A stretch of DNA of 64,000 nucleotides from Auanema rhodensis (Eukaryota > Animalia > Nematoda): NCBI GenBank assembly GCA_964057225.1, contig OZ059897.1, positions 5,828,001-5,892,000 on the forward strand, read 5' to 3'. The notes under the pieces are model-generated. The model made no database searches. It was not told where the DNA came from and saw only the letters and a program-made list of their open reading frames with translations. Of this stretch, positions 28,356 to 51,204 are shown one piece after another; positions within the stretch are counted from its first letter, which is position 1, and every line of letters begins with the position of its first letter. The translations under genes were made by a program, and so were the position numbers.

Positions 28356-29142
28356 AATATATAATATTAATTGTACATATTGTGTAAAATAAATTTATTA
28401 TTAATTAATTCTCAAAAGCTTAATCTATCAACTGGCTTGCCTTTGATGTATGAAAAACATGAAAGAAAACGAGGAGAAAGACATAAAAGTTTGAACTTTT
28501 TTGACGTGTCAATGTTATAGCTTCTGATAATCGTACATTGTAAAATTAAATTGTAAAATATGGCAAAGATAAGACGTTATATGATGAAGAAAGTTGATTT
28601 TGCTTCAAAAGGTCTTCTAGTCTTCGTATACTTTCATTATTTCTTTATACTTTCTATAGATGATGTTGGTTGATACTTGTCTTCAATATACTTCAACATG
28701 TAAAACTTCTTCGAAACAATGTTAGAATATAAGAATTTATTCTAAAATAATAATTATTTTAAATTTTATGTTTAATTATTTATATAAATAAACATGTATA
28801 TACATATGTATGTATGTATATGTACATATTATAATATACTACATGCTTTTATTTGATTAATGTGATATAATCTTATTAAAGATAGCAATTTACAGGACAC
28901 GTACAAGTTCTTATCTGATTTTAATAATGTAATCCTTATATTCATTCATAACTTTCTTACATCAGCTTACTCCTGTTTGAAATAATCTTTCGTCATTAAT
29001 TGACCTTTTTTTCAATTTTTAAAAGTTTCAAATATGATTTAATCGTAAAATGTTTTTGTATAAAATGAAAGATTTATCATTTTCAATATATGAATTTCAT
29101 TTTATCTTTCTAAATAAAACTTGTCAAGTACTGTTTTTGCAG

Positions 29143-31538
29143 ATGTGGTGGGTGATATTTCTCTTAGGTATCACCTCTGTTTTGGCAGCAGATAAAGGTG
29201 AAAAGGATATTGTCTCAAACTTACCAGGATTAACATTCAAGCCAAAATTCAATACTTATTCGGGATACTTACAAGCAGGAAAACCAGAATGGAGAATGCA
29301 TTACATGTACAAACACGTCTCATATTTTCTTCTTCTTTAAACTATACATTTTAAGGTTAACTGAATCGAAAAGCAATCCAAAAACAGATCCTTTACTTGT
29401 ATGGTTCAATGGAGGTCCAGGATGTTCCTCATATGCTGGTCTATTCGAAGAATTAGGCCCATTCCAAATCAATTATGATGGCAAAACTGTATATGAAAAT
29501 GTTTATTCATGGAATGCGGTAAGAGAGAGCCTAAACTCATTGCATAGTTAGTATAACTTAGAAAGCCAATGTTCTTTATTTGGAATCTCCTATTGGAGTT
29601 GGATTTTCTTACAATACCAAGAATGATAGTTATTCAGTAGCTAATGATGATCAAAGTAGTCAGCAAAACATGGCTGCTCTTATTGATTTCTTCAAGTCAG
29701 TTATTATCTTCTATTTGAAAATATTTAATTATTTCTCAACTTAGTCTTCATGCTCGCTATGCCAATAGAACATTCTATCTATCCGGAGAATCCTATGCTG
29801 GAATCTATATTCCCATGCTGTCTCAATCAATCGTTAAAGCTATTAACAATGGAACATTCCCCAATCCTAATTTCCAAGTAATCTCTAATTACTTTTCTTA
29901 TGTTAAAAATCTTTTATTGAACATCAAATTCTTATAATCTGATCTTGTTCAAGGGTGCCGCTATCGGAAATGGTTTCTTAAACGTTAAATTACTTTATAA
30001 TTCCATTGTTACTTGGAGTGCTTATCATGGTCGAGTTGGACCAGAGTATGTTATTGTTTTCCATCTACAAGAATTGCCTAAAAAGCTTACATCTTATCTA
30101 ACTAAGTATCATGCTGTTATAGACAATGGGAGCAAATCAAGAAAGAATGCGGAAAACCAGGAACTGATATTGATACTTTTGATTTCACTAAGTTCATTAC
30201 TCCTAACAAAACTAATGGTCAGCTTCAAATAATATTAGTTATAAAGAAAGCAATTCAGGCATCGATTATCAGGGCGATTCAAGTGCTTGTGGTCAATTAA
30301 TTGACCCTCTGATTCGAATGCCATTGAAGTGAGTTAAGCATAATTTGATCGTGAAAGTAACATTCATTCAGTATGTTCCCTTACAACTTTTTCCAAGATT
30401 GCTATGATAGCGCTTACATCGAATCTGCACCGGTACCACCCAAACCAGCTCATCGTCGTCGTGTAAGAAGAGCAGCTAGTTCATTCCAAGGATCACAGAC
30501 CATCAACAAGAATACTGCAGTAAATACATTCTTATATTGAAAAAACGAAGAATTAGAATCTTGGTAGCATCATGTTTCATCATATTTTCAGAAATTATTG
30601 AATCACATCTCTACTGATAACCAATGGGGATACAACTGCTGGAACGAGAATGCATTATCTATTTACTCAAATCGTAAAGATGTTCAAAAAGCTTTGAATA
30701 TTGAACCAGCATGGCAACAACAAGCCGGAGGAAAATTCCAATGGACTGATTGCAAGTAAGATAACTTATCTCTTTCTACTAATTTTCATATAAATTATAT
30801 TTTTAGTGATGCAATCTATGAACAATATCACAATACTTACAATGATACTGAACAATTCTTCAAATATGTTATTGATAATGTGAAAGTAAAAACTAAAATT
30901 TGAAAAAAAAGTTCTAAAGAAACCCTATGTTAGATTCCAAACTTCCGTTTCTTGATCTACAACGGAGATATTGATACCGTTTGTAATTACTGGGGAGATG
31001 CACTTCACATGCGAAATATGGCAACTCATATCAGAAACAAAACAGTATGCTGACTGATTATTTTTAAACATTTTAAAACAATTTATTGTTACAGAATACA
31101 AATCGTGACTATTGGTACTTCAGTCAAAATCAGCAAACTGCTGGATATCAGATGCGATATTCCGGTAAATCAGGAGCTAATGCTAGTATCAGTATTGATG
31201 TCATTACTATTAAGGTTAATTCGTTGAACACTATAGATAACAATGAAATGAACAATAACTTTTATTATTTTACAGGGAGCTGGACATATGGTTCCTAACG
31301 ATAGACCAGGACCAGCACTTCAAATGATCACAAACTTCTTGTTCCCAGGAGAGAAAGGTGTAGATTATTCTGCTCAAGTTGTTGATCCAATGCCACAGGT
31401 GAGGAAAAAATAAAAATTAAATTAAATTAAATTAAAAAGTAATTTCAGCCATCAGAAACAATTTACGACACGGGCTCCGGCATAATCAATACATTACCTT
31501 ATGTATTATTATTATTAATTTTACAGATATTCCATTGA
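29143..31538 (+). CDS. Serine carboxypeptidase S10 (cathepsin A-like), single domain
   Basis: Signal peptide [43 protein letters not shown] (catalytic Ser), YNGDIDTVC (Asp), GAGHMVP (His), hydrophobic C-terminus. Confidence 0.95.
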
Positions 31539-31807
31539 AAATATGTATTTTATATAATTTTTAAAATGTGAAAAATAGAAAAAATAGTTAATAAAATAAA
31601 TTTGAAAGATAAGTTTGTAGTTTGTAGGATAGTTGTAATACGCATAATACACGGGAGTGAAGTAATTACTACATAAGAGAGAGAGTTCGGTGTTCTAGCT
31701 CTTGTCTCTTGGGAATGTAATCTTGATGTTTCTGGCGTCTTGGCGTTCCTAGATTAAAATATAAGTATGATATTTGCCTGAAACACCTTTTAGTTGCGTT
31801 AATGTCG

Positions 31808-31868
31808 AGTCCATCCACAAGAGTGTTCACTTAAAAGTTCAGGCTGAGAGGCACGTTGGGTCAGGTGT
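31808..31868 (+). repeat. Diverged partial copy of the 200-bp satellite monomer
   Basis: ccatccacaagagtgttcacttaaaagttcaggctgagaggcacgttgggtcaggtg aligns with the satellite ccatccacaaattttgttcacaaaaaagttcaggctgtaggcacgttgtgtccggtg. Confidence 0.8.
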
Positions 31869-32808
31869 GGGGGTCCTCGGAAAAAAATTTTTTAAAAATG
31901 TCCTCGGAGGGATTCTGGGGGTCCTCGGCGTCGTCGGTGTCCCGGCTGAAAAAATAATTCAATCGGGGGTCGCGTCGTGGGTCGGGGCGTCGTGGGTCGG
32001 GGGCGTCGCAGGTCTTCTGGGGTTGTCGTGGGGTCTTCTGGGGTCGTCAATTTTAAAATTGTCCGAGTAGGGATTCTGGTGGTCCTCGGCGTCGTCGGTG
32101 TCCCGGCTGGAAAAATAATTCAAAATTCCTCGGGGGTCGCGTCGTGGGTCGGGGGCGTCGTGGGTCGGGGTCCGCGGGTCCTTGGGGGTCCTAGTCCTGG
32201 GGTCCGCGGGTCCTTGGGGGTCCTAGTCCTGGGGTCCGCGGGTCCTTGGGGGTCCTAGTCCTGGGGTCCGCGGGTCCTTGGGGGTCCTAGTCCTGGGGTC
32301 CGCGGGTCCTCGGGGGTCCTGGTCCTGGGGTCCGCGGCGGTCCTGGTCGGGGGTCCTGGGGTCCGCGGGTCATCGGGGGTCCTGGGGTCCGCGGGTCATC
32401 GGGGGTCCTGGGGTCCGCGGGTCCTCGGGGGTCCTGGGGTCCGCGGGTCCTCGGGGGTCCTGGGGTCCGCGGGTCCTCGGGGGTCCTGGGGTCCGCGGGT
32501 CCTCGGGGGTCCTGGACCTGGGGTCCGCGGGGGTCCTGGTCCTCGAGGTCCTGGTCCTCGGGGGTCCTGGTCCTGGGGTCCGCGGGGGTCCTGGTCCTCG
32601 AGGTCCTGGTCCTCGGGTCCGCGGGGGTCCTGGTCCTCGAGGTCCTGGTCCTCGGGGGTCCTGGTCCTGGGGTCCGCGGGGGTCCTGGTCCTCGAGGTCC
32701 TGGTCCTCGGGGGTCCTGGTCCTGGGGTCCGCGGGTCCTCGGGGGTCCCGGTCCTGGGGTCCGCGGGTCCTGGTCCTCGGGGGTCCTGGTCCTCGGGGGT
32801 CCTCGGGT
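31869..32808 (+). repeat. GC-rich, G-tract minisatellite block
   Basis: A ~100-bp segment repeated at ~160-bp spacing (from ~31909 and ~32069). Then a 32-bp period GGGGTCCGCGGGTCCTTGGGGGTCCTAGTCCT, a 26-bp period GGGGTCCGCGGGTCCTCGGGGGTCCT, and GGTCCT variants. Confidence 0.95.
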
Positions 32809-32861
32809 GCTCCTGTATCTGTACCTGTATCTGTAACTTTTGTCTTACCTTCTGTTCATCA

Positions 32862-32933
32862 GCAACCTGTGGGATTCGATCTTGGACTGTTTGAGTGCCA
32901 GTCTGTCATCTTATCCTTTCGGCTATTGACCAC
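32862..32933 (-). pseudogene. tRNA-derived relic (A/B box-like, poor stems)
   Basis: The minus strand reads GTGGTCAATAGCCGAAAGGATAAGATG...CAAGATCGAATCCCACAGGTTGC, 72 nt, with A-box-like TAGCCGAAAGG and B-box-like GATCGAATCC. The acceptor stem is mostly G-T or mismatched. Confidence 0.4.
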
Positions 32934-33943
32934 ATTTATATATAATTGGTAACTATATGATAAAATAAAAAATGGATATATCATATAAACTATAAGGCAA
33001 CATATTTTCATAATGGGGCTATGTTTAAGACGTCATATCTCATCGATATGTCAATATTTTCAATTTTCAATTAGATTTTCATGTTCTACGGGTTCGATTC
33101 CATATTTAGTAAGTCTCGTAATATTTAATATATTTTTTTAAAACATACTTTTAGTAAAATTATCAAAGAATTCTCTTCAAGGTCGCGCTCCACTGATAAT
33201 CATGAATTTGATTCAAATATATTATTCTTATTAAACTAAAATTAAAATATTTTATTTAATGATTTTTATAAATTTATATAATAATTTTATATTTTTAAAT
33301 ATTAAATAATTTTTATTATTTCTATTAATTTGTTTCTTTTGCTCGGCGATTATCCAGACAAATTCTTATTAACAAATGTTTTTCACAACTATTTAAGAAA
33401 TATTATATTTTCGTATATGACATGAAGCGATTGTTGTCCAATTCGTAGTAGCCTCAACCTCCTTTACATCGTTCCATATTTTGAAAAATTTCAAATTTCT
33501 TGGTTTTGGGAGATCCGAAAGAAATAAATCGACAATCGAACTTGAACACTTTTAAAATTCTTCAATCCCTACTGGAGTAATGTATAATCATACTTGTACA
33601 GTTAAATTACTGTACTTTTATTACTTTAAGTAATATATATTTTATTTTTTTGATGAAATTCAAAAAAAATTAATTAAAAGCAATTTTTAACACAAAAACT
33701 TATTTTATTAATAGATTGTGGAAAATTGAAGAAAATAAGAAATTTTTCTTTCATAAACAACTTAAGCTGTGTGTTATTCAATTTCTGTCTTGCGCACTCG
33801 TTTTTGAAAATTTTATTATCTCAATTCAACATTCTCTTTCGAGAAGGGACGCAAGAAGTTAATCATATATTAAAAAATCTCCGTAAGGGTTTGTGAATAG
33901 CAATGAACAGGAATAAAAATGTTTCTAACTTCCAATTCTATTG

Positions 33944-34015
33944 GCCCAAGTAGTATAGTGGTTAGTACTCCACGTTGTGGCCGTGGCGACACAGGTTCGA
34001 TTCCTGTCTTGGGCA
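33944..34015 (+). tRNA. tRNA-His (GTG)
   Basis: GCCCAAG/CTTGGGC acceptor stem, D-arm GTATAGTGGTTAGTAC, anticodon arm CCACG-TTGTGGC-CGTGG, T-arm ACAGG-TTCGATT-CCTGT, discriminator A, downstream TTTTT terminator. Confidence 0.97.
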
Positions 34016-34063
34016 ATCGTTTTACATGTTTCTTTTTTTATCTAATTGAAATAAAGGAAAAAA

Positions 34064-34160
34064 AGCGAAGTTGATACCACGAAGATCCAGCTAAGTTGAT
34101 TCCAAGAAGCGTTCGTAACTGGGACCGAGACACCACTTTTGTAGTTGAAGAGCGGAGACG
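34064..34160 (+). repeat. Isolated copy of the 25-bp repeat plus the start of spacer module B
   Basis: agcgaagttgataccacgaagatccagctaagttgattccaagaagcgttcgtaactgggaccgagacaccacttttgtagttgaagagc matches ~43885-43972. Confidence 0.9.
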
Positions 34161-34211
34161 TTTGCGGCCAAACATGATGATGACTCAATTACTAGACTGA
34201 CTTATTTCGAT

Positions 34212-37200
34212 TTTTGTTCACAAAAAAGTTCAGGCTGTAGGCACGTTGTGTCCGGTGATTGTCAATTTTTCTCAAAGATTTTCAACTATAACCAAACAAA
34301 AATAGTTACAACTTGGGTATTCAGATGTGTAGATTCTGAATTACTTAATGAGATTTGGCTGTGACTTCTCAGTTTTCCGGAAAAAAGGTTTATATCAACC
34401 CCATCCACAAATTTTGTTCACAAAAAAGTTTAGGCTGTAGGCACGTTGTGTCCGGTGATTGTCAATTTTTCTCAAAGATTTTCAACTATAACCAAACAAA
34501 AATAGTTACAACTTGGGTATTCAGATGTGTAGATTCTGAATAACTTAATGAGATTTGGCTGTGACTCCTTAGTTTTCCGGGAAAAAGGTTTATATCAACC
34601 CCATCCACAAATTTTGTTCACAAAAAAGTTTAGGCTGTAGGCACGTTGTGTCCGGTGATTGTCAATTTTTCTCAAAGATTTTCAACTATAACCAAACAAA
34701 AATAGTTACAACTTGGGTATTCAGATGTGTAGATTCTGAATTACTCAGTGAGATTTGGCTGTGACTCCTTAGTTTTCCGGGAAAAAGGTTTATATCAACC
34801 CCATCCACAAATTTTGTTCACAAAAAAGTTTAGGCTGTAGGCACGTTGTGTCCGGTGATTGTCAATTTTTCTCAAAGATTTTCAACTATAACCAAACAAA
34901 AATAGTTACAACTTGGGTATTCAGATGTGTAGATTCTGAATAACTTAATGAGATTTGGCTGTGACTCCTTAGTTTTCCGGGAAAAAGGTTTATATCAACC
35001 CCATCCACAAATTTTGTTCACAAAAAAGTTTAGGCTGTAGGCACGTTGTGTCCGGTGATTGTCAATTTTTCTCAAAGATTATCAACTATAACCAAACAAA
35101 AATAGTTACAACTTGGGTATTCAGATGTGTAAATTCTGAATTACTTAATGAGATTTGGCTGTGACTTCTCAGTTTTCCGGAAAAAAGGTTTATATCAACC
35201 CCATCCACAAATTTTGTTCACTAAAAAGTTCAGGCTGTAGGCACGTTGTGTCCGGTGATTGTCAATTTTTCTCAAAGATTTTCAACTATAACCAAACAAA
35301 AATAGTTACAACTTGGGTATTCAGATGTGTAGATTCTGAATTATTTAATGAGATTTGGCTGTGACTCCTCAGTTTTCCGGAAAAAAGGTTTATATCAACC
35401 CCATCCACAAATTTTGTTCACAAAAAAGTTCAGGCTGTAGGCACGTTGTGTCCGGTGATTGTCAAATTTTCTCAAAGATTATCAACTATAACCAAACAAA
35501 AATAGTTACAACTTGGGTATTCAGATGTGTAGATTCTGAATAACTCAATGAGATTTGGCTGTGACTTCTCAGTTTTCCGGAAAAAAGGTTTATATCAACC
35601 CCATCTACAAATTTTGTTCACTAAAAAGTTCAGGCTGTAGGCACGTTGTGTCCGGTGATTGTCAATTTTTCTCAAAGATTATCAACTATAACCAAACAAA
35701 AATAGTTACAACTTGGGTATTCAGATGTGTAGATTCTGAATAACTCAATGAGATTTGGCTGTGACTTCTCAGTTTTCCGGAAAAAAGGTTTATATCAACC
35801 CCATCCACAAATTTTGTTCACAAAAAAGTTCAGGCTGTAGGCACGTTGTGTCCGGTGATTGTCAATTTTTTTCAAAGATTATCAACTATAACCAAACAAA
35901 AATAGTTACAACTTGGGTATTCAGATGTGTAGATTCTGAATTACTTAATGAGATTTGGCTGTGACTTCTCAGTTTTCCGGAAAAAAGGTTTATATCAACC
36001 CCATCCACAAATTTTGTTCACAAAAAAGTTCAGGCTGTAGGCACGTTGTGTCCGGTGATTGTCAATTTTTTTCAAAGATTATCAACTATAACCAAACAAA
36101 AATAGTTACAACTTGGGTATTCAGATGTGTAGATTCTGAATTATTTAATGAGATTTGGCTGTGACTCCTCCGTTTTCCGGGAAAAAGGTTTATATCAACC
36201 CCATCCACAAATTTTGTTCACAAAAAAGTTCAGGCTGTAGGCACGTTGTGTCCGGTGATTGTCAATTTTTCTCAAAAGATTTTCAACTATAACCAAACAA
36301 AAATAGTTACAACTTGGGTATTCAGATGTGTAGATTCTGAATAACTCAATGAGATTTGGCTGTGACTTCTCAGTTTTCCGGAAAAAAGGTTTATATCAAC
36401 CCCATCTACAAATTTTGTTCACAAAAAAGTTCAGGCTGTAGGCACGTTGTGTCCGGTGATTGTCAATTTTTCTCAAAGATTTTCAACTATAACCAAACAA
36501 AAATAGTTACAACTTGGGTATTCAGATGTGTAGATTCTGAATAACTCAATGAGATTTGGCTGTGACTTCTCAGTTTTCCGGAAAAAAGGTTTATATCAAC
36601 CCCATCTACAAATTTTGTTCACAAAAAAGTTCAGGCTGTAGGCACGTTGTGTCCGGTGATTGTCAATTTTTCTCAAAGATTTTCAACTATAACCAAACAA
36701 AAATAGTTACAACTTGGGTATTCAGATGTGTAGATTCTGAATAACTCAATGAGATTTGGCTGTGACTTCTCAGTTTTCCGGAAAAAAGGTTTATATCAAC
36801 CCCATCTACAAATTTTGTTCACAAAAAAGTTTAGGCTGTAGGCACGTTGTGTCCGGTGATTGTCAATTTTTCTCAAAGATTTTCAACTATAACCAAACAA
36901 AAATAGTTACAACTTGGGTATTCAGATGTGTAGATTCTGAATAACTCAATGAGATTTGGCTGTGACTTCTCAGTTTTCCGGAAAAAAGGTTTATATCAAC
37001 CCCATCCACAAATTTTGTTCACAAAAAAGTTCAGGCTGTAGGCACGTTGTGTCCGGTGATTGTCAATTTTTCTCAAAGATTATCAACTATAACCAAACAA
37101 AAATAGTTACAACTTGGGTATTCAGATGTGTAGATTCTGAATTACTCAGTGAGATTTGGCTGTGACTCCTCCGTTTTCCGGGAAAAAGGTTTATATCAAC

Positions 37201-40200
37201 CCCATCCACAAATTTTGTTCACAAAAAAGTTTAGGCTGTAGGCACGTTGTGTCCGGTGATTGTCAATTTTTCTCAAAGATTTTCAACTATAACCAAACAA
37301 AAATAGTTACAACTTGGGTATTCAGATGTGTAGATTCTGAATTACTCAGTGAGATTTGGCTGTGACTTCTCAGTTTTCCGGAAAAAAGGTTTATATCAAC
37401 CCCATCCACAAATTTTGTTCACAAAAAAGTTCAGGCTGTAGGCACGTTGTGTCCGGTGATTGTCAATTTTTCTCAAAGATTTTCAACTATAACCAAACAA
37501 AAATAGTTACAACTTGGGTATTCAGATGTGTAGATTCTGAATAACTCAATGAGATTTGGCTGTGATTTCTCAGTTTTCCGGAAAAAAGGTTTATATCAAC
37601 CCCATCTACAAATTTTGTTCACAAAAAAGTTCAGGCTGTAGGCACGTTGTGTCCGGTGATTGTCAATTTTTCTCAAAGATTTTCAACTATAACCAAACAA
37701 AAATAGTTACAACTTGGGTATTCAGATGTGTAGATTCTGAATTATTTAATGAGATTTGGCTGTGACTCCTCCGTTTTCCGGGAAAAAGGTTTATATCAAC
37801 CCCATCTACAAATTTTGTTCACAAAAAAGTTTAGGCTGTAGGCACGTTGTGTCCGGTGATTGTCAATTTTTCTCAAAGATTATCAACTATAACCAAACAA
37901 AAATAGTTACAACTTGGGTATTCAGATGTGTAGATTCTGAATTACTCAGTGAGATTTGGCTGTGACTTCTCAGTTTTCCGGAAAAAAGGTTTATATCAAC
38001 CCCATCCACAAATTTTGTTCACAAAAAAGTTTAGGCTGTAGGCACGTTGTGTCCGGTGATTGTCAATTTTTCTCAAAGATTTTCAACTATAACCAAACAA
38101 AAATAGTTACAACTTGGGTATTCAGATGTGTAGATTCTGAATAACTCAATGAGATTTGGCTGTGACTTCTCAGTTTTCCGGAAAAAAGGTTTATATCAAC
38201 CCCATCTACAAATTTTGTTCACAAAAAAGTTCAGGCTGTAGGCACGTTGTGTCCGGTGATTGTCAATTTTTCTCAAAGATTATCAACTATAACCAAACAA
38301 AAATAGTTACAACTTGGGTATTCAGATGTGTAAATTCTGAATTACTTAATGAGATTTGGCTGTGACTTCTCAGTTTTCCGGAAAAAAGGTTTATATCAAC
38401 CCCATCCACAAATTTTGTTCACAAAAAAGTTTAGGCTGTAGGCACGTTGTGTCCGGTGATTGTCAATTTTTCTCAAAGATTATCAACTATAACCAAACAA
38501 AAATAGTTACAACTTGGGTATTCAGATGTGTAGATTCTGAATTACTCAGTGAGATTTGGCTGTGACTTCTCAGTTTTCCGGAAAAAAGGTTTATATCAAC
38601 CCCATCTACAAATTTTGTTCACAAAAAAGTTCAGGCTGTAGGCACGTTGTGTCCGGTGATTGTCAATTTTTTTCAAAGATTATCAACTATAACCAAACAA
38701 AAATAGTTACAACTTGGGTATTCAGATGTGTAGATTCTGAATTATTTAATGAGATTTGGCTGTGACTCCTCAGTTTTCCGGAAAAAAGGTTTATATCAAC
38801 CCCATCCACAAATTTTGTTCACAAAAAAGTTCAGGCTGTAGGCACGTTGTGTCCGGTGATTGTCAAATTTTCTCAAAGATTATCAACTATAACCAAACAA
38901 AAATAGTTACAACTTGGGTATTCAGATGTGTAGATTCTGAATAACTCAATGAGATTTGGCTGTGACTTCTCAGTTTTCCGGAAAAAAGGTTTATATCAAC
39001 CCCATCCACAAATTTTGTTCACAAAAAAGTTCAGGCTGTAGGCACGTTGTGTCCGGTGATTGTCAAATTTTCTCAAAGATTATCAACTATAACCAAACAA
39101 AAATAGTTACAACTTGGGTATTCAGATGTGTAGATTCTGAATAACTCAATGAGATTTGGCTGTGACTTCTCAGTTTTCCGGAAAAAAGGTTTATATCAAC
39201 CCCATCTACAAATTTTGTTCACAAAAAAGTTCAGGCTGTAGGCACGTTGTCTCCGGTGATTGTCAATTTTTCTCAAAGATTATCAACTATAACCAAACAA
39301 AAATAGTTACAACTTGGGTATTCAGATGTGTAGATTCTGACTTATTTAATGAGATTTGGCTGTGACTCCTCCGTTTTCCGGGAAAAAGGTTTATATCAAC
39401 CCCATCCACAAATTTTGTTCACAAAAAAGTTCAGGCTGTAGGCACGTTGTGTCCGGTGATTGTCAAATTTTCTCAAAGATTATCAACTATAACCAAACAA
39501 AAATAGTTACAACTTGGGTATTCAGATGTGTAGATTCTGAATAACTCAATGAGATTTGGCTGTGACTTCTCAGTTTTCCGGAAAAAAGGTTTATATCAAC
39601 CCCATCTACAAATTTTGTTCACAAAAAAGTTCAGGCTGTAGGCACGTTGTGTCCGGTGATTGTCAATTTTTCTCAAAGATTTTCAACTATAACCAAACAA
39701 AAATAGTTACAACTTGGGTATTCAGATGTGTAGATTCTGAATAACTCAATGAGATTTGGCTGTGACTTCTCAGTTTTCCGGAAAAAAGGTTTATATCAAC
39801 CCCATCCACAAATTTTGTTCACAAAAAAGTTCAGGCTGTAGGCACGTTGTGTCCGGTGATTGTCAATTTTTCTCAAAGATTTTCAACTATAACCAAACAA
39901 AAATAGTTACAACTTGGGTATTCAGATGTGTAGATTCTGAATTACTCAGTGAGATTTGGCTGTGACTCCTCCGTTTTCCGGGAAAAAGGTTTATATCAAC
40001 CCCATCCACAAATTTTGTTCACAAAAAAGTTTAGGCTGTAGGCACGTTGTGTCCGGTGATTGTCAATTTTTCTCAAAGATTTTCAACTATAACCAAACAA
40101 AAATAGTTACAACTTGGGTATTCAGATGTGTAGATTCTGAATTATTTAATGAGATTTGGCTGTGACTCCTCAGTTTTCCGGGAAAAAGGTTTATATCAAC

Positions 40201-43025
40201 CCCATCCACAAATTTTGTTCATAAAAAAGTTTAGGCTGTAGGCACGTTGTGTCCGGTGATTGTCAATTTTTCTCAAAGATTATCAACTATAACCAAACAA
40301 AAATAGTTACAACTTGGGTATTCAGATGTGTAGATTCTGAATTATTTAATGAGATTTGGCTGTGACTCCTCAGTTTTCCGGAAAAAAGGTTTATATCAAC
40401 CCCATCTACAAATTTTGTTCACAAAAAAGTTCAGGCTGTAGGCACGTTGTGTCCGGTGATTGTCAATTTTTCTCAAAGATTTTCAACTATAACCAAACAA
40501 AAATAGTTACAACTTGGGTATTCAGATGTGTAGATTCTGAATAACTCAATGAGATTTGGCTGTGACTTCTCAGTTTTCCGGAAAAAAGGTTTATATCAAC
40601 CCCATCTACAAATTTTGTTCACAAAAAAGTTCAGGCTGTAGGCACGTTGTGTCCGGTGATTGTCAATTTTTCTCAAAGATTATCAACTATAACCAAACAA
40701 AAATAGTTACAACTTGGGTATTCAGATGTGTAGATTCTGAATAACTCAATGAGATTTGGCTGTGACTTCTCAGTTTTCCGGAAAAAAGGTTTATATCAAC
40801 CCCATCCACAAATTTTGTTCACAAAAAAGTTCAGGCTGTAGGCACGTTGTGTCCGGTGATTGTCAATTTTTTTCAAAGATTATCAACTATAACCAAACAA
40901 AAATAGTTACAACTTGGGTATTCAGATGTGTAGATTCTGAATTACTCAGTGAGATTTGGCTGTGACTCCTCCGTTTTCCGGGAAAAAGGTTTATATCAAC
41001 CCCATCCACAAATTTTGTTCACAAAAAAGTTTAGGCTGTAGGCACGTTGTGTCCGGTGATTGTCAATTTTTTTCAAAGATTATCAACTATAACCAAACAA
41101 AAATAGTTACAACTTGGGTATTCAGATGTGTAGATTCTGAATTACTCAGTGAGATTTGGCTGTGACTCCTCCGTTTTCCGGGAAAAAGGTTTATATCAAC
41201 CCCATACACAAATTTTGTTCACAAAAAAGTTTAGGCTGTAGGCACGTTGTGTCCGGTGATTGTCAATTTTTCTCAAAGATTTTCAACTATAACCAAACAA
41301 AAATAGTTACAACTTGGGTATTCAGATGTGTAGATTCTGAATTATTTAATGAGATTTGGCTGTGACTCCTCAGATTTCCGGAAAAAAGGTTTATATCAAC
41401 CCCATCCACAAATTTTGTTCACAAAAAAGTTTAGGCTGTAGGCACGTTGTGTCCGGTGATTGTCAATTTTTCTCAAAGATTTTCAACTATAACCAAACAA
41501 AAATAGTTACAACTTGGGTATTCAGATGTGTAGATTCTGAATAACTCAATGAGATTTGGCTGTGACTTCTCAGTTTTCCGGAAAAAAGGTTTATATCAAC
41601 CCCATCCACAAATTTTGTTCACAAAAAAGTTCAGGCTGTAGGCACGTTGTGTCCGGTGATTGTCAATTTTTCTCAAAGATTATCAACTATAACCAAACAA
41701 AAATAGTTACAACTTGGGTATTCAGATGTGTAGATTCTAAATAACTTAATGAGATTTGGCTGTGACTCCTTAGTTTTCCGGGAAAAAGGTTTATATCAAC
41801 CCCATCCACAAATTTTGTTCACAAAAAAGTTTAGGCTGTAGGTACGTTGTGTCCGGTGATTGTCAATTCTTCTCAAAGATTATCAACTATAACCAAACAA
41901 AAATAGTTACAACTTGGGTATTCAGATGTGTAGATTCTAAATAACTTAATGAGATTTGGCTGTGACTCCTTAGTTTTCCGGGAAAAAGGTTTATATCAAC
42001 CCCATCCACAAATTTTGTTCACAAAAAAGTTTAGGCTGTAGGCACGTTGTGTCCGGTGATTGTCAATTTTTCTCAAAGATTATCAACTATAACCAAACAA
42101 AAATAGTTACAACTTGGGTATTCAGATGTGTAGATTCTAAATAACTTAATGAGATTTGGCTGTGACTTCTCAGTTTTCTGGAAAAAAGGTTTATATCAAC
42201 TCCATCCACAAATTTTGTTCACAAAAAAGTTCAGGCTGTAGGCACGTTGTGTCCGGTGATTGTCAATTTTTTTCAAAGATTATCAACTATAACCAAACAA
42301 AAATAGTTACAACTTGGGTATTCAGATGTGTAGATTCTAAATAACTTAATGAGATTTGGCTGTGACTCCTTAGTTTTCCGGGAAAAAGGTTTATATCAAC
42401 CCCATCCACAAATTTTGTTCACAAAAAAGTTCAGGCTGTAGGCACGTTGTGTCCGGTGATTGTCAATTTTTTTCAAAGATTATCAACTATAACCAAACAA
42501 AAATAGTTACAACTTGGGTATTCAGATGTGTAGATTCTGAATTATTTAATGAGATTTGGCTGTGACTCCTTAGTTTTCCGGGAAAAAGGTTTATATCAAC
42601 CCCATCCACAAATTTTGTTCACAAAAAAGTTTAGGCTGTAGGCACGTTGTGTCCGGTGATTGTCAATTTTTCTCAAAGATTTTCAACTATAACCAAACAA
42701 AAATAGTTACAACTTGGGTATTCAGATGTGTAGATTCTAAATAACTTAATGAGATTTGGCTGTGACTCCTTAGTTTTCCGGGAAAAAGGTTTATATCAAC
42801 CCCATCCACAAATTTTGTTCACAAAAAAGTTCAGGCTGTAGGCACGTTGTGTCCGGTGATTGTCAATTTTTCTCAAAGATTATCAACTATAACCAAACAA
42901 AAATAGTTACAACTTGGGTATTCAGATGTGTAGATTCTGAATAACTCAATGAGATTCGGCCGTGACTTCTCAGTTTTCCGGAAAAAAGGTTTATATCAAC
43001 CCCATCCACAAATTTTGTTCACGAA
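34212..43025 (+). repeat. Tandem satellite array, 200-bp monomer, about 44 copies
   Basis: Exact 200-nt period (ORF-track starts 34355, 35155, 35355, ...). One 1-nt insertion near 36275. Units differ at only a few positions. Confidence 0.99.
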
Positions 43026-43129
43026 AAAATTCTGGATATTGACATTATTTGAATTTCTATTCATTTGCTCGGCTGTTATAAAGACAAATTTATTAAATTT
43101 TTATTAAAATCCAGAAAAAAAGAAAAATC

Positions 43130-44532
43130 ACTGAAGTTGGGTAGACTCCGAGATCTATTATCCCGGAGAACCAGCGAAGTTGATACCACGTAGACCCAGC
43201 GAAGTTGATACCACGTAGACCCAGCGAAGTTGTTACCACGAAGATCCAGCGGGAACGGTGGGCACTAACACGATAACTCGGTTAGTACCATTGTCCCGGA
43301 GTCTCATCAACTTCACTGGCCCTACCGAAAAAAAAAAAGTAGAACCAGTGAAGTTGAGTAGACTCCGAGATTTTTTGTCCCGCCGAAGCAACGAAGTTGA
43401 TACCACGTAGACCCAGCGAAGTTGATACCACGTAGACCCAGCGAAGTTGATACCACGTAGACCCAGCGAAGTTGATACCACGAAGACCCGGCGAAGTTGA
43501 TACCACGTAGACCCAGCGAAGTTGATACCACGAAGACCCGGCGAAGTTGATACCACGTAGACCCAGCGAAGTTGACACCACGTAGACCCAGCGAAGTTGT
43601 TACCACGAAGATCCAGCGGGAACGGTGGGCACTAACACGATAACTCGGTTAGTACCATTGTCCCGGAGTCTCCTCAACTTCACTGGCCCTACCGAAAAAA
43701 AAAAAGTAGAACCAGTGAAGTTGAGTAGACTCCGAGATTTTTTGTCCCGCCGAAGCAACGAAGTTGATACCACGTAGACCCAGCGAAGTTGACACCACGT
43801 AGACCCAGCGAAGTTGATACAACGAAGACCCGGCGAAGTTGATACCACGTAGACCCAGCGAAGTTGTTACCACGTAGATCCATCGAAGTTGAGACCATGA
43901 AGAAGCAGCGAAGTTGATTCCATGAAGCGTTCATTGCTGGGACCGAGACACCACTTTTGTAGTTGAAGAGCAGAGACGGTCGGGCCCACCGTTCACACTC
44001 ATCTACTTCAGAATAGTAGGAGTCAGGGACCTGGAAATAAACAATACATAACCAAAAAAAATGAAGTTGATACCACGAAGATCCAGCAAAGTTGATACCA
44101 CGAAGACCCAGCGAAGTTGATACCATGAAGATCCAGCGAAGTTGATACCACGAAGAAGCAGCGAAGTTGATTCCATGAAGCGTTCATAGCTGGGACCGAG
44201 ACACTTTTGTAGTTGGAGAGCAGAGACGGTCGGGCCCACCGTTCACACTCATCTACTTCAGAAGAGTAGGAGTCAGGGACCTGGAAATAAACAGTACATA
44301 ACCAAAAGAAATGAAGTTGATACCACGAAGATCCAGCGAAGTTGATACCACGAAGATCCAGCGAAGTTGATACCACGAAGATCCAGCGAAGTTGTTTCCA
44401 TGAAGCGTTCATAGCTGGGACCGAGACACTTTAGTAGTTGAAGAGCAGAGACGGTCGGGCCCACCGTTCACACTCATCTACTTCAGAAGAGTCGGTCCTG
44501 GAAAGAAGAAGTAGACCAGCTCCGAAGTTGAC
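43130..44532 (+). repeat. 25-bp minisatellite clusters (CCAGCGAAGTTGATACCACG[T/A]AGA[C/T]) alternating with two types of hairpin-rich spacer
   Basis: Five clusters of roughly 3-9 units. Spacer A at ~43251-43390 and ~43618-43757, with a partial copy at 43130. Spacer B at ~43925-44062, ~44177-44312 and ~44402-44500. Confidence 0.95.
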
Positions 44533-44784
44533 ATGTCGACTGACTGATTCCTTATGGAAAGCAATTCCTTATATACCATTTTCCACGTAAGTCCACGTCT
44601 GCGTATAATTTCAAAAACTATTTTTGAAATTTCCGGTTGTTCATAGACCAATCTCGCAAAAATTTCAAAATAAATGTCCGATTTTGAATTTTCGTGTTAA
44701 CAAAGTTTATTCGAAACAAATTAAAAAAGAAAAAATAATTGAATTTGAACTGTTTTCTAACTAACTAAGATTAAACTAAACTGA

Positions 44785-44914
44785 GGTATTCAGTCGTGTA
44801 GAATCTGAATTACTCAGTGAGATTTGGCTGTGACTCCTTAGTTTTCCGGAAAAAAGGTTTATATCAACCCCATCCACAAATTTTGTTCACAAAAAAGTTC
44901 AGGCTGTAGGCACG
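44785..44914 (+). repeat. Partial forward satellite monomer abutting the inverted array
   Basis: ggtattcagtcgtgtagaatctgaattactcagtgagatttggc...caggctgtaggcacg, then attttc, then reverse-oriented units. Confidence 0.95.
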
Positions 44915-44920
44915 ATTTTC

Positions 44921-46766
44921 TGATAATCTTTGAGAAGAATTGACAATCACCGGACACAACGTACCTACAGCCTGAACTTTTTTGTGAACAAAATTTGTGG
45001 ATGGGGTTGATATAAACCTTTTTTCCGGAAAACGGAGGAGTCACAGCCAAATCTCACTGAGTAATTCAGAATCTACACATCTGAATACCCAAGTTGTAAC
45101 TATTTTTGTTTGGTTATAGTTGATAATCTTTGAGAAAAATTGACAATCACCGGACACAACGTACCTACAGCCTGAACTTTTTAGTGAACAAAATTTGTGG
45201 ATGGGGTTGATATAAACCTTTTTCCCGGAAAACGGAGGAGTCACAGCCAAATCTCATTAAGTAATTCAGAATCTACACATCTGAATACCCAAGTTGTAAC
45301 TATTTTTGTTTGGTTATAGTTGATAATCTTTGAGAAAAATTGACAATCACCGGACACAACGTGCCTACAGCCTGAACTTTTTTGTGAACAAAATTTGTGG
45401 ATGGGGTTGATATAAACCTTTTTCCCGGAAAACGGAGGAGTCACAGCCAAATCTCATTGAGTTATTCAGAATCTACACATCTGAATACCCAAGTTGTAAC
45501 TATTTTTGTTTGGTTATAGTTGATAATCTTTGAGAAAAATTGACAATCACCGGACACAACGTGCCTACAGCCTGAACTTTTTTGTGAACAAAATTTGTGG
45601 ATGGGGTTGATATAAACCTTTTTCCCGAAAAACGGAGGAGTCACAGCCAAATCTCATTGAGTTATTTAGAATCTACACATCTGAATACCCAAGTTGTAAC
45701 TATTTTTGTTTGGTTATAGTTGATAATCTTTGAGAAAAATTGACAATCACCGGACACAACGTGCCTACAGCCTGAACTTTTTTGTGAACAAAATTTGTGG
45801 ATGGGGTTGATATAAACCTTTTTCCCGGAAAACGGAGGAGTCACAGCCAAATCTCATTAAGTAATTCAGAATCTACACATCTGAATACCCAAGTTGTAAC
45901 TATTTTTGTTTGGTTATAGTTGATAATCTTTGAGAAAAATTGACAATCACCGGACACAACGTGCCTACAGCCTGAACTTTTTTGTGAACAAAATTTGTGG
46001 ATGGGGTTGATATAAACCTTTTTCCCGGAAAACGGAGGAGTCACAGCCAAATCTCATTAAGTAATTCAGAATCTACACATCTGAATACCCAAGTTGTAAC
46101 TATTTTTGTTTGGTTATAGTTGATAATCTTTGAGAAAAATTGACAATCACCGGACACAACGTGCCTACAGCCTGAACTTTTTTGTGAACAAAATTTGTGG
46201 ATGGGGTTGATATAAACCTTTTTCCCGGAAAACGGAGGAGTCACAGCCAAATCTCATTAAGTAATTCAGAATCTACACATCTGAATACCCAAGTTGTAAC
46301 TATTTTTGTTTGGTTATAGTTGATAATCTTTGAGAAAAATTGACAATCACCGGACACAACGTGCCTACAGCCTGAACTTTTTTGTGAACAAAATTTGTGG
46401 ATGGGGTTGATATAAACCTTTTTCCCGGAAAACTGAGAAGTCACAGCCAAATCTCATTAAGTAATTCAGAATCTACACATCTGAATACCCAAGTTGTAAC
46501 TATTTTTGTTTGGTTATAGTTGATAATCTTTGAGAAAAATTGACAATCACCGGACACAACGTGCCTACAGCCTGAACTTTTTAGTGAACAAAATTTGTGG
46601 ATGGGGTTGATATAAACCTTTTTTCCGGAAAACTGAGAAGTCACAGCCAAATCTCATTGAGTTATTCAGAATCTACACATCTGAATACCCAAGTTGTAAC
46701 TATTTTTGTTTGTTTATAGTTGATAATCTTTGAGATAAATTGACAATCACCGACGGACACAACGTA
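44921..46766 (-). repeat. Inverted array of the same 200-bp satellite, about 9 copies
   Basis: Reverse complement of the left-array monomer with a 200-nt period; the same pseudo-ORFs appear on the minus strand. Confidence 0.99.
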
Positions 46767-47482
46767 CATCTCAGCTTTTTTATTAATTCTTTTATTTTGC
46801 TCGGCGATTATAAAGACAAAGTTTTTATTAACAAATGTTTTTTACAACTATTTAAATACTATAATGATTAGATATAATGTTATAAGAGAAAAAGTATCTC
46901 GTTGATTTGTTGATTTAACTTATTATGCACAATATTGAGGATATGAACTAGAAATAAAAACAAATTACAATTTTAAATTTTAAAACATTTGGTTAGATAT
47001 ACATACATATATATGGTTAACTGAAAATGTGAGAAATTTATCCCGATTAGACTGAAACCCTGCATTTAACATTGATTATTGAAGCTGAAGAACATAATAT
47101 TGAATTCTTAACATTAAATTTCTCAATTTGGGATGAGGAGAGGGAGGGACAAAACCACCGTAAATCATTGCATTTGGAAATAAAAGTAGAAGAAAAGTTG
47201 TGTAAGAGATGAATTTTGCATGTAGATCATGATTTGTTTCTGTTATAATCTTTCCAGAAAAATATAAATTAAAAAAATTAGTGAAGGAGAGTACAAAAAC
47301 ATTTGAAAACCGGGTGCAATGCATATATTTTGAATTTTGTTTTTATAATCTCATTCCTCAGCTCTGATTTTGTTTTTTTTTCTGATTTTGAGAGCAAAGA
47401 AAGACTTGCACAGGTAGAAATATTGATAAACTTTTCTATTTACAGACTATGAATCTATATGGAGCTTTTCCGTTTTACAGGA

Positions 47483-50400
47483 TTATACTGAAACATCGGA
47501 GAATGCTCGATCTCGGAGATCATGTGCAGAATCCACAACTCCTACAGCCATATGGGGATTTACTAATCGTCGTAATCGAGCAATTTCTTCATGTGCCTTC
47601 TCTAATTCTTCAGTCAAACAAGATTGTCTAGAAATGAATGTTATAGTTTAATCTAACTATTACTATACTTACCTATCTTTCATCTTCTTAATATCTGTTT
47701 TACAATTCACATTTTGTCGTAATAAATCAGATCGATCAATATGAAGACGATCAATGTCTGGATGTGATGTATCTGATCGTTTTTGCTCATTTCCACTATC
47801 ATCTGTGCAATAGTTACAGGATGATCTTGTTGCTCTATTTGAAAGATCAGCAGATGACATTGATTCCTTAAATAAATTTAATTAAAATGTTTCAAAAATG
47901 ATTCAACAAACCATTCCTGTATCAGAATCATGCTCATGTTCAGGTGATTCGTTATCTGTTGATGATAAATCCCAATCATGACGACATGGGCTTTCATTAT
48001 GATGATCTTTCATGCTTAAGTGGCGGCTAATGATACGACGCTGAACTCCGCGAACTGGAGATACAGTAGCTGGTAAGGTTTCATCATCAGCTTGATCGCT
48101 GTTATCATCAGGAATTGGGCTATGATGGCGAAGGGAGCCAGCACCACTGGACGAGCTGCTCTTCGAATCTTTCTCCGATGTCGTTAAACGCTTAGGTATC
48201 TGAAAATCAGATTTCATTCATATTCAATTATTTAAATTTGGTAATGTGAAATCTCTACAATATTAGAAGATAATAACAAACCTGGAAGCTTCTGGCTGGA
48301 ACACACATCGACACAGCTCTTGATGGTGGAACTGTGTTAACTTCTTGAGAAACAGATCTCGATCTACCAATGAAGGCTTTCTTGACTGAGTTCAATAATC
48401 CACCAGAGGTTGCTTGAATAGCATTAGAATCGGCTGATTGAAGCAGAGGCATTCCGTAGAATTCAGCTCGTTCTTTCAAGCTTCCGAACAATGTATCCAA
48501 TAAGCTAGCTCTTGTTCTTTCAGCTAATTTGGCAAATTTAGCGCTCTTGTAGGCAGCATTCTCAGCATTGATCAATTTTGTCAACAAAAAGTTTCTGAAG
48601 TCTTGACCACGCTTGAATATGGATGGAGCAGGCAATGTTGGACCGAAGAATGGAACATCATCACGAGCAGCAACAGATACCTAAATAAGTAAATATTAGT
48701 TAGAGAATATAATTAAAATAGTAAATACAGTTATTTTGTATTTTATATGAAATACTTACTCTGTATCTAACACGATCAGTTAAAGGATCAATAGGTTGAA
48801 CTACAATGTAAGCATGTAAGAAGTTGCTTGCAATCATATCTGGAGCAAATGGTGTGTTAGCTTCCTGAAAAAAAGATCAATTTAAAGAAATAAAAAATAA
48901 AATATTAACCTGGAAAACAATGGCAACAATATCATTTCCAATATGACGCTTTCTTTGTAACTGTTGGCTATCACCCAGAGTGTAAGGAAGCATAGTTGAA
49001 ACATGGAACAAGCATTCACGTCCTCTGAATTCGCTGTATACAGCGTTTTGTCCAGTTTGTCCATGAACCGTATCCAATCCACCACGATATCCCTGTATAA
49101 ATAAATAGAATAATAGAATAATATTTGATAATACTAACAGTAAAGCCTTGCAAGTTGATGGTGTCTCCTATGATTTCCAAAAATTCATTGAAAGATGGAC
49201 TTCCATGAGCATTTCCGAAAAGCTCTTCTTCGGTTGTTTGACCACCCTTTTGATAAACAATACCAAACTTGTAAGTATTTGTAAGAACATGTTCATCGTA
49301 TCTAAAAATTAATAAATAAATAAAATATAATTATAATTATAATTTAATAAAAATAAAATTGAAACAAAGACATACTGAACAATCAGTTCAGACCCTCCAG
49401 GGAATGCAACTGGTGTGAAGTTTTCTGTGCTCACATCATCTAAGAGAATTTTAGCCATTCGAGAAGCTGAAGGACGATCAGCAACAACTTAAATAAATAA
49501 TTTATATTTTCTCAACAAAAGAAAAACAATAAATATACCTGATGCTGAAACAATTTCATGAATTGTTCCTTGCTTCGTTCGTAACATGATACGAAAATGA
49601 TCTTGAGATGAAATAACTTCTGTACGAACAGATAGTACAAGAGGACCAAGAACTGGGTCCATTGCAAAGAAATCATGATGTTCTCTGCCATAGAAATGTC
49701 TTCGATAACAATGACTTGTTTCATCAGTTTCTAACTTAAAACGAGCACAACTGTTCATACATAATCCCATAACCTTGAAAAATTACAATAAAACAAAATA
49801 AAAATATTTAAATTTAACCTCTTCATCAATAGAAATATTACTGTTACTAACACCATCCATCCAAAATCCATTAGATGGTAAAACGATTTGAGGATAAGGT
49901 CCAGTACGTTTCAAAATCTTGAAATAAAATAATTTTTAAATAATTATGATTTTTTATAGAAATATTACTAATGTCATGACTATTATAGCTTCAACCTTGC
50001 TGCCACCTCTGTCTCTATTTCTCCTATATTTTCTCTCTCTTTCTCTCTTTTTTTTACTATTTTGTGAATAAAATCATAAAAGTACATCCGACAATAGTTA
50101 TAACTTGAAGTATGAGTACGTATGTTTGGTCACAAGGAAATGATTGAAAGCCATGACAACCCGCTTAGTCATGTATCTTCTTCAATTGTCTAGTTGTTTG
50201 TATATTTATTTTTCAATGGTCACCTCTCAAAATTGTTATAACTATGACATTTATGAAAAGGCTATTTCAAGTAGTCAATAACAATGGCTGAACTGAAAGT
50301 TAGCACTTTTTTTTTCAATTTTCTTGGAAATTCAATCAGAAAACATCGAAAATTTTGAGCTTGTGATTAAAATTATTTTGAAAAATGGTTTGAAAAAGTT

Positions 50401-51204
50401 TTGAAACTTACATCTTGCATCAATTCTCTAGTTGTTATATTATCTTTTTTACGATCTCCATTTTCATTCTGAAAATTATAATTAATATAATAGAATAATA
50501 ATAATAATAAATATTTTTAATTATTTTAAATTTTTCCATGTGAGTTTATTTTTAATTTCCAAAAAAAAGAAGATATTTTAATGATTAACCTCTATTCTTT
50601 TTAATGTTACGGCTGAACATGTCGATGAAATGAGGACCGGAGAGCTCACTATCGTTGACATACTACGCTCAGATGTCTTCCGGCTTCGGAAGACTGACGA
50701 TAGTAGACTAAGTTTTCTAGTGGGTGCCGACAGTTTACGGGCAGGTAAGCTCTCCGTGGATGCCTTCATTTGATAACGTTCAGCTTGTCGCAGGTTTTCC
50801 ATGGCTCGAAGAAGTTTATCAGCAGCCATTAATTTGAATTCGTCTGCAGGAGCTAGTGAGGATCTGGAGTCAGATAGTTCCATCACTCCAAGACTGCGTC
50901 CTGTATCTAATGCAGCGGCAGCGGTTGTGAGGCAATCCATACTGACAGCTCTAGTAGGATGATGCTCACAGTCTGGTTCACGTATAGGTGTAAGTGTTGG
51001 TAAAAGTCGTGAACGACGTCGAATTCGACGTGCTACAGCTCCAGAAGGCAAGCCAGAGACAATACCAACTGCGCCGTACGTCCAATCGACATCTTCGTCC
51101 TCGGAACTGTCGATAAAGCGCATCCTGATGGCAAGAGGCAGCGCGTCTGAAGATGATAGACATGCTAGATGAGGAAAAGGAACAAATGGATAAGGGACAG
51201 CCAT
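47483..51204 (-). CDS. Rap1 GTPase-activating protein (RAP1GAP family); further 5' exons may lie upstream
   Basis: [75 protein letters not shown]...[19 protein letters not shown] (Asn thumb), [15 protein letters not shown], and a C-terminal coiled-coil-like end. Confidence 0.95.

Follow-up and report, generated by a model that had tools for sequence, protein, structure and literature searches.

The stretch of DNA analysed here, hereafter the window, is a 64-kb segment of contig C5 of the nematode Auanema rhodense (C5:5828001-5892000), and its subject is a 15-kb island of repeats that contains two arrays of a 200-bp satellite. Taken together, the evidence indicates that the island is probably a non-coding, low-copy euchromatic satellite locus whose composite part was spread by ectopic duplication and which is retained in the soma, with no dedicated function indicated. 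A 180.9-Mb germline assembly has been described for A. rhodense APS4 (bioRxiv 10.64898/2026.08.27.747507), and the assembly searched here comprises 180,911,798 bases in 112 contigs. The island occupies the intergenic gap between two convergent genes, a serine carboxypeptidase (Peptidase_S10) on the plus strand at ~29050-31300 to its left and a Rap-GAP gene on the minus strand at ~47400-51300 to its right. The 15 kb are embedded in 48 kb of non-repetitive DNA with conserved genes, and a scan of the type made by Tandem Repeats Finder (TRF) detected no tandem repeat scoring at least 150 elsewhere in the window.

The original prediction, made from the letters of the window, had described the island as three tandem copies (blocks 1 to 3) of one element, each closed by the same boundary motif. 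The modules that it had named were all recovered at or near the positions it had assigned them, by TRF and by blastn self-comparison. The three-copy description holds in part: blocks 2 and 3 share a doubled module, whereas block 1 belongs to a different, dispersed repeat family, termed R. Blocks 2 and 3 together form a composite that reads, from left to right, 25-mers, leader, 44 direct monomers, end motif, 25-mer/hairpin cassette, leader, partial monomer and nine inverted monomers. Its parts are as follows.

34058-34160, plus strand: array-start cassette of the first unit, consisting of two 25-mers and a partial module B (89-90% identity to 44360-44453, 43884-43978 and 44135-44228).
34161-34211, plus strand: short leader remnant with GACTGACT at 34195 (homologous to the longer leader at 44526-44778).
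34212-43032, plus strand: direct satellite array, 44.1 head-to-tail copies of the 200-bp unit (TRF, 97% matches).
43033-43163, plus strand: array-end segment that includes copy 2 of the boundary motif (core 43064-43079) and has similarity to the R 3' region (blastn).
43164-43922, plus strand: 2.1 copies of a 367-bp unit, made of runs of 25-mers and a double-hairpin spacer (TRF).
43810-44495, plus strand: 2.4-2.7 copies of a 250-bp unit, made of four or five 25-mers and module B (TRF).
44526-44778, plus strand: leader, with GACTGACT at 44538 (genome search).
44779-44914, plus strand: partial direct monomer (monomer positions 99-200 plus 1-34), one arm of a fold-back (blastn self-comparison).
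44915-44959, no strand assigned: asymmetric spacer of ~45 bp at the strand switch (reading of the sequence and arm coordinates).
44921-46752, minus strand: inverted satellite array, 9.2 copies of the 200-bp unit (TRF, 98% matches).
46777-46855, plus strand: boundary motif copy 3 (core 46796-46811), a piece of R 3' sequence closing off the inverted array (89% identity to 33319-33396).

The two arrays of the window are closely related. Two monomer variants are intermixed in the direct array, whose monomers have a mean pairwise identity of 97.0%; the inverted array is more uniform (98.4%), and its consensus is 97.5% identical to that of the direct array. Neither lag analysis nor a per-monomer table revealed a higher-order period in the arrays. 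The variant that composes the inverted array recurs at dispersed positions in the direct array, among them 36012, 37013, 37613 and 39213. At the strand switch, two arms of 136 bp (44779-44914 and 44960-45095) are 94% complementary and are separated by the spacer of ~45 bp. The sharing of a variant with the direct array, together with the geometry of arms and spacer, suggests that the nine inverted units would be a local fold-back product that was later amplified, and not an inherited arm.

The order of modules in blocks 2 and 3 is not peculiar to the window. Queries made from the module-B tail, the leader, the array start, and the end segment with its hairpin match only three loci in the genome, namely the window and two sites on contig C7, at 16.446 Mb (C7a) and 16.700 Mb (C7b); the sole other match is an additional, degenerate copy of the cassette at C7:16508955. 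At both C7a and C7b the order, read on the minus strand, is a long array of the 200-bp unit, the end segment, the hairpin unit (three copies or one), the module-B unit (two to three copies), the leader and a partial monomer. The expectation of the original prediction that the modules would co-occur in fixed order elsewhere was thus borne out for blocks 2 and 3. After the partial monomer, C7a and C7b carry an inverted end segment and then one or two inverted monomers, whereas the window lacks the inverted end segment. The number of direct and inverted monomers differs widely among the loci, with 44 + 9 in the window, 304 + 1 at C7a and ~411 + 2 at C7b. The 304 monomers of C7a extend over 61 kb, and the far end of that array opens with about eight degenerate 25-mers and a shortened leader. 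The presence of degenerate 25-mers and leader at that end indicates that each locus holds a tandem pair of one module of 25-mers, leader, monomers and end segment.

The cassettes of the three loci are 86-97% identical between the window and C7, and 95-98% identical between C7a and C7b. Copies of the 367-bp unit at C7a and C7b are 93-97% identical to that of the window, and those of the 250-bp unit 86-92%. The surroundings, as far as they were read, are unrelated: C7a and C7b show no homology to each other on the left, and the C7 loci hold no counterpart of the flanks of the window, the histidine transfer RNA (tRNA-His) gene described below or the unique DNA to the right of the island. Non-repetitive DNA surrounds the 61-kb array of C7a.

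The cassette has a nested structure. Its 25-bp repeats, at 43167-44405, are organised by TRF into 2.1 copies of the 367-bp unit and 2.4 copies of the 250-bp unit. One arm of the second hairpin of the 367-bp unit is an inverted 25-mer-like unit, and the hairpin spacer has a DNA fold of -37.6 kcal/mol (z = -6.7); no significant fold was obtained for module B. At the start of the direct array, the 25-mer/module-B piece at 34064-34160 matches 44360-44453 at 90% identity (blastn). The leader had been called unique, which is correct within the window, where it is single, yet it recurs at C7a and C7b (91-92% identity), and a degenerate version lies at the far end of the C7a array. A stretch of ~25 nt is the best-conserved part of the leader in all copies, including the degenerate one (window 44566-44592; L014 ~2985-3010, minus strand), and contains TATATACC...CCACGT. 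Possibly this stretch acts like a promoter, directing transcription into the array. The remaining GACTGACT matches in the window come from a (GACT)n microsatellite in the right flank, at 55269-55507, that is unrelated to the island.

The 200-bp unit has the properties of a satellite, with head-to-tail monomers of constant length in long arrays, and with monomers that are more alike within arrays than between them. A conserved 33-mer of the monomer has 437 + 755 occurrences in the genome, which corresponds to ~1,190 monomers and ~0.24 Mb. Each array has its own variants. The diagnostic variant of the window has 43 + 9 occurrences, all inside the window; that of C7b has 2 + 411, nearly all of which, among the matches listed, lie at C7 ~16.70-16.72 Mb, with one stray at C7:16466404. 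A third type occurs at C7:16269774-16306215 and C5:1637029-1641295, and as a single copy at C3:19037934. The C5:1637029-1641295 array, which shares its subfamily with the C7:16.27-16.31 Mb array, contains a head-to-head strand switch of its own between ~1638466 and 1638658. Identity within arrays is 94-98%, and between arrays 88-93.5%: the consensus of the window is 93.5% identical to that of C7a and 88.5% identical to that of C7b. This array-private homogenisation is ordinary concerted evolution. The array-private variants and the differing monomer counts show that each array has expanded or contracted and been homogenised locally. Searches with the cassette gave no match at the arrays of the third type; the cassette is therefore no general attribute of the satellite.

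Block 1 lies to the left of the composite and is different in kind. It comprises the following features, to which a tRNA gene between block 1 and the composite is added.

31798-31867, plus strand: degenerate fragment of a 200-bp monomer (about positions 187-200 plus 1-57), joined directly to G-rich DNA (blastn).
31868-32170, plus strand: two copies of a G-rich unit of ~160 bp leading into the minisatellite (31890-32035 against 32051-32204, 84-89% identity; also at C5:6553706-6554060).
32167-32815, plus strand: G-rich minisatellite with a period of 16/32 bp, 13-17% indels and 65% GC (TRF, composition).
32830-33320, plus strand: core of family R (genome searches).
33319-33396, plus strand: boundary motif copy 1 (core 33338-33353), inside the R unit (100% identical at C5:6555245-6555322).
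33397-33688, plus strand: remaining part of the young duplicate of the R unit (97% identity to C5:6555323-6555614).
33944-34015, plus strand: tRNA-His(GTG) gene (ARAGORN, Rfam).

Family R has at least 35 copies in the genome, with 71-88% identity, on contigs C1 and C3-C8 (genome searches), and two copies outside the window were read. Most copies start at one base (query position 15, window 32830), immediately after a minisatellite, and the core is ~500 bp long. Some R copies are paired, 3.4-4.1 kb apart. In the R copies of the window, of C5:6.554 Mb and of C7b, a minisatellite stands before the core; it is GC-rich in each case and differs in sequence between copies. A very young paralogue of block 1, at C5:6.554-6.556 Mb, extends over ~1.6-1.75 kb, taking in G-rich DNA, the R core, boundary motif copy 1 and the 292 bp that follow it, with 97-100% identity outside the minisatellite. 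The degenerate monomer fragment at 31798-31867, which is 76-80% identical to array monomers over 71 bp, is missing from this paralogue. Block 1 is separate from the composite and shares with blocks 2 and 3 only this degenerate monomer of 70 bp and the boundary motif of 45-79 bp.

At C7b, a copy of R (L003:7780-8166) lies beyond the inverted monomers and is preceded by a different GC-rich minisatellite with a 45-bp period. This minisatellite (L003:8191-9735; C7:16698191-16699735) has 34 copies with 1% indels and contains open frames rich in Pro, Ser and Val. These long frames encode repeats of the PPSV/SPGRVAPS type, and partial 200-bp monomers both interrupt the minisatellite and are joined to it in frame. 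Family R could be the 3' end of a low-complexity (Pro/Ser/Gly-rich) gene family with a conserved hydrophobic C-terminal stretch, or it could be a non-coding repeat. Sequence conservation in R extends beyond the putative stop codon, and R has no match in Pfam.

The boundary motif had been listed at the end of each of the three blocks; a role as general terminator is not sustained by the comparison with other loci. The window contains exactly three instances of its core, TTTGCTCGGC(K)(R)TTAT (33338, 43064 and 46796), all on the plus strand, where none is expected by chance. Copies 1 and 3 are 89% identical over 79 bp, and copy 2 is 81-82% identical to them over ~45 bp (33327-33372 and 46787-46831). 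Since homology with the C5 paralogue runs on past the motif to 33688, copy 1 is internal to a duplicate and is not a boundary. The end segments behind both arrays of the window (bound2 and bound3) are fragments of the R 3' region. The TTTGCTCGGC core is missing from the array ends at C7a and C7b, at both of which positions 44-131 of the end segment are conserved. In the inverted end segment of C7a (L002:9960-10000 and L005:1-30, minus strand), a gap of 21 bp removes exactly the motif core TTTGCTCGGCTGTTATAAAGA, with a CA dinucleotide on each side. On this sequence evidence, the boundary motif is most readily understood as a remnant of the R-family 3' sequence bordering the arrays rather than as a signal.

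The coding potential of the island appears to be limited to one tRNA gene. The intact tRNA-His(GTG) gene, which the original prediction overlooked, lies 42 bp upstream of the first 25-mer and was identified by ARAGORN and by the Rfam tRNA model (67.3 bits, E = 1e-13). It was the only Rfam match over the non-satellite parts of the island. Matches below threshold to Rfam microRNA models were rejected because they merely reflect hairpins. ARAGORN also reported a tRNA-Pro(CGG) at 32470-32554, in the G-rich minisatellite, and at L001:9584-9680, in the C5:6.554 Mb paralogue; Rfam did not support it, and it is regarded as spurious. No long open reading frame of the island (minisatellite, cassette) or of the C7b minisatellite matched Pfam, in searches of unspliced frames, which agrees with the earlier view that the island has no coding capacity. 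The G-rich minisatellite, whose open frame of 224 amino acids is among those without a Pfam match, is most likely non-coding.

On the interpretation favoured here, two unrelated components lie side by side in the gap between the two genes. One is the R unit with the tRNA-His gene, and the other the composite satellite, a doubled series of 25-mer cassette, leader, monomers and end segment. The composite is one of three paralogues, which would go back to the ectopic duplication or insertion of an array along with its border cassette, with repair-mediated capture, reintegration of circular DNA and segmental duplication as candidate routes. The arrays then expanded or contracted and were homogenised locally by unequal exchange and gene conversion. 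The nine inverted units may derive from one monomer variant by a local fold-back or template switch, followed by amplification. Transposon carriage, circular-DNA reintegration and interlocus conversion have all been proposed for euchromatic satellites (PMC11610590), and both duplication and mobile-element routes are established for the euchromatic satellites of beetles and flies (PMC11610590, PMC7403614, PMC7492417).

Several observations weigh against this interpretation. A simple duplication leaves unexplained why R units adjoin 200-bp monomers at several independent junctions (window 31867, C7b, bound2 and bound3). Three copies with ordered modules, unrelated flanks and sharp edges would also be expected of a mobile element. 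The cassette bears features that resemble transposon ends, namely short 25-mer-like subrepeats in both orientations and strong hairpins. At C7a and C7b it is bracketed by inverted repeats of monomer plus end segment, which is the layout of a foldback element, and in the window it stands between direct and inverted 200-bp arrays. Somatic retention, finally, is drawn from sequence context and not from read depth.

The second, third and fourth of these observations are the basis of the alternative that comes nearest to the favoured interpretation. The composite would be a non-autonomous DNA transposon of foldback or hairpin-ended type, with arms of 200-bp subrepeats around a 25-mer/hairpin middle, and the arms would grow into arrays after insertion and so seed satellites. 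The original prediction had likewise proposed a non-autonomous composite element. In favour of this alternative, Helitron and other transposon genes are present in the published annotation of A. rhodense (bioRxiv 10.64898/2026.08.27.747507). Three array outer ends also fall within monomer positions 1-22, at position 1 on the left of the window (34212), position 4 on the right of C7a (L002:9739) and position ~22 on the right of the window (46752); this clustering may reflect a preferred end point or chance.

Other results do not fit such an element. The array ends compared were both ends in the window, those of C7a and the near end of C7b; the far end of C7b and the arrays at C7:16.27 Mb and C5:1.64 Mb were left aside. 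The outer ends are unlike at the three loci, as the right end in the window is followed by an R fragment and the C7b arm is fused, at monomer position 106, to the minisatellite of an R unit. No target-site duplication was present at the ends read. An inverted-repeat scan of block 1 (31300-34250) returned only AT-rich, low-complexity pairs and no terminal inverted repeats of the kind that bracket a MULE. The junctions at 34016-34215, 43033-43165, 44400-44560 and 46740-46860 share no Helitron-type 5'-TC/3'-CTRR ends with a hairpin 10-12 nt before the 3' terminus, and a CTAG at 34191 has no counterpart at 44534. The window contains no open reading frame for a transposase or a Rep/helicase, and it lacks the inverted end segment that C7a and C7b possess. 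Cassette, leader and hairpin have no further match beyond the three full copies and the one degenerate cassette, a number too small to separate transposition from duplication, and other arrays of the 200-bp satellite have no cassette at all. The small number of copies, the inconsistent ends, the absence of target-site duplications and Helitron ends at the sites inspected, and the existence of cassette-less arrays favour ectopic duplication over a transposon, and a foldback-type element is considered an unlikely source of the composite. It is a little harder still to accept that the satellite itself was born from a foldback-like element with 25-mer/hairpin ends, which inserted at three somatically retained sites and whose arms grew to arrays of 10-80 kb.

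In FB-type foldback elements, tandem subrepeats make up inverted arms, which differ and vary in length and enclose a non-repeated middle; non-autonomous copies are non-coding. The composite resembles them in having inverted subrepeat arms of unequal length around a middle domain and in being non-coding. It differs in its subrepeat of 200 bp and in having one arm of 61-82 kb, and neither a target-site duplication, conserved outer termini nor a many-copy family was found. Non-autonomous Helitron/Helentron elements such as DINE-1 and the oyster HINE are a known source of dispersed satellite arrays and, like the composite, are non-coding and place a satellite-like array beside hairpin-forming sequence (PMC7492417). 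Unlike Helitrons, the composite has no identifiable 5'-TC/3'-CTRR ends and no A/T insertion, occurs in three copies instead of hundreds or thousands, and has far longer arrays. Further parallels are the Cast1-9 satellites of Tribolium castaneum (PMC11610590) and the X-linked 1.688 and Rsp-like satellites of Drosophila (PMC7403614). There too, a monomer of a few hundred bp is arrayed in gene-rich DNA, subsets of arrays have a common transposon-like end sequence, and inter- and intrachromosomal spread is followed by local homogenisation. Unlike those satellites, the satellite of A. rhodense has only five or six arrays, three of them with a common border cassette; the cassette is itself nested, with 25-mers in 250- and 367-bp units and hairpins; and the host discards most satellites from its soma.

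This last property raises the question of whether the island is itself discarded. Programmed DNA elimination in A. rhodense removes ~61% of the germline genome, the bulk of it tandem repeats whose units measure 167-504 bp (bioRxiv 10.64898/2026.08.27.747507). A 29-bp palindrome whose GGC/GCC core is conserved marks each of the 28 internal break sites, where telomeres are added, and the eliminated DNA has >90% repeats per 10 kb and 3% of the genes (bioRxiv 10.64898/2026.08.27.747507). The island was earlier suggested to be germline-restricted DNA or a chromosome-structural unit tied to elimination. Its 200-bp unit is of the size of those that are eliminated, and one array of the family lies at C5:1.64 Mb. 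However, the window has no break palindrome, as judged from the described motif core rather than from a position weight matrix. It contains no TAGGC...GCCTA dyad, no TTAGGC repeat, and no SFE-like GGC-N3/4-GCC or near-palindrome of 28-29 bp; the two GGC-N3-GCC sites in the window have only 2-4 of 10 palindromic flank pairs each, and neither is near the island. The setting also differs from that of eliminated DNA, in that the repeats are confined to 15 kb within gene-bearing, non-repetitive DNA. The 61-kb array of C7a likewise has no break palindromes around it. The germline-restricted satellites of A. rhodense (AT-1/2, AC-I to VI, XT-1/2) belong to the same genome, and their units fall in the same size range, yet they form multi-megabase blocks bounded by break palindromes (bioRxiv 10.64898/2026.08.27.747507), unlike the present family, which totals ~0.24 Mb and whose arrays, where read, form islands in non-repetitive DNA (gene-bearing in the window) without break signals. 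Given the lack of a break palindrome and the non-repetitive, gene-bearing flanks, somatic cells most likely keep the island, and its elimination, or a structural role in elimination, is very improbable.

An assembly artefact, in which collapsed or chimeric satellite reads were placed between the two genes, is hardly credible: misassembly typically strikes satellite arrays and inverted junctions, but the array has many positional variants and a private subfamily to which HiFi reads can be anchored, two other loci were independently assembled with the same architecture, and the edges of the island meet unique, gene-bearing DNA without gaps.

The results do not overturn current views of satellite biology, and the island is a well-documented instance rather than a new principle. 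The three paralogous loci, with a common cassette and private arrays, constitute a small and clean system in which the rates of array expansion, fold-back inversion and ectopic spread could be studied. Moreover, satellite islands that are probably retained in gene-rich DNA stand in contrast to the habit of a species that discards almost all of its satellite DNA from the soma. Such a contrast could reveal whether satellites that are kept differ from those that are eliminated in their origin, chromatin state or transcription.

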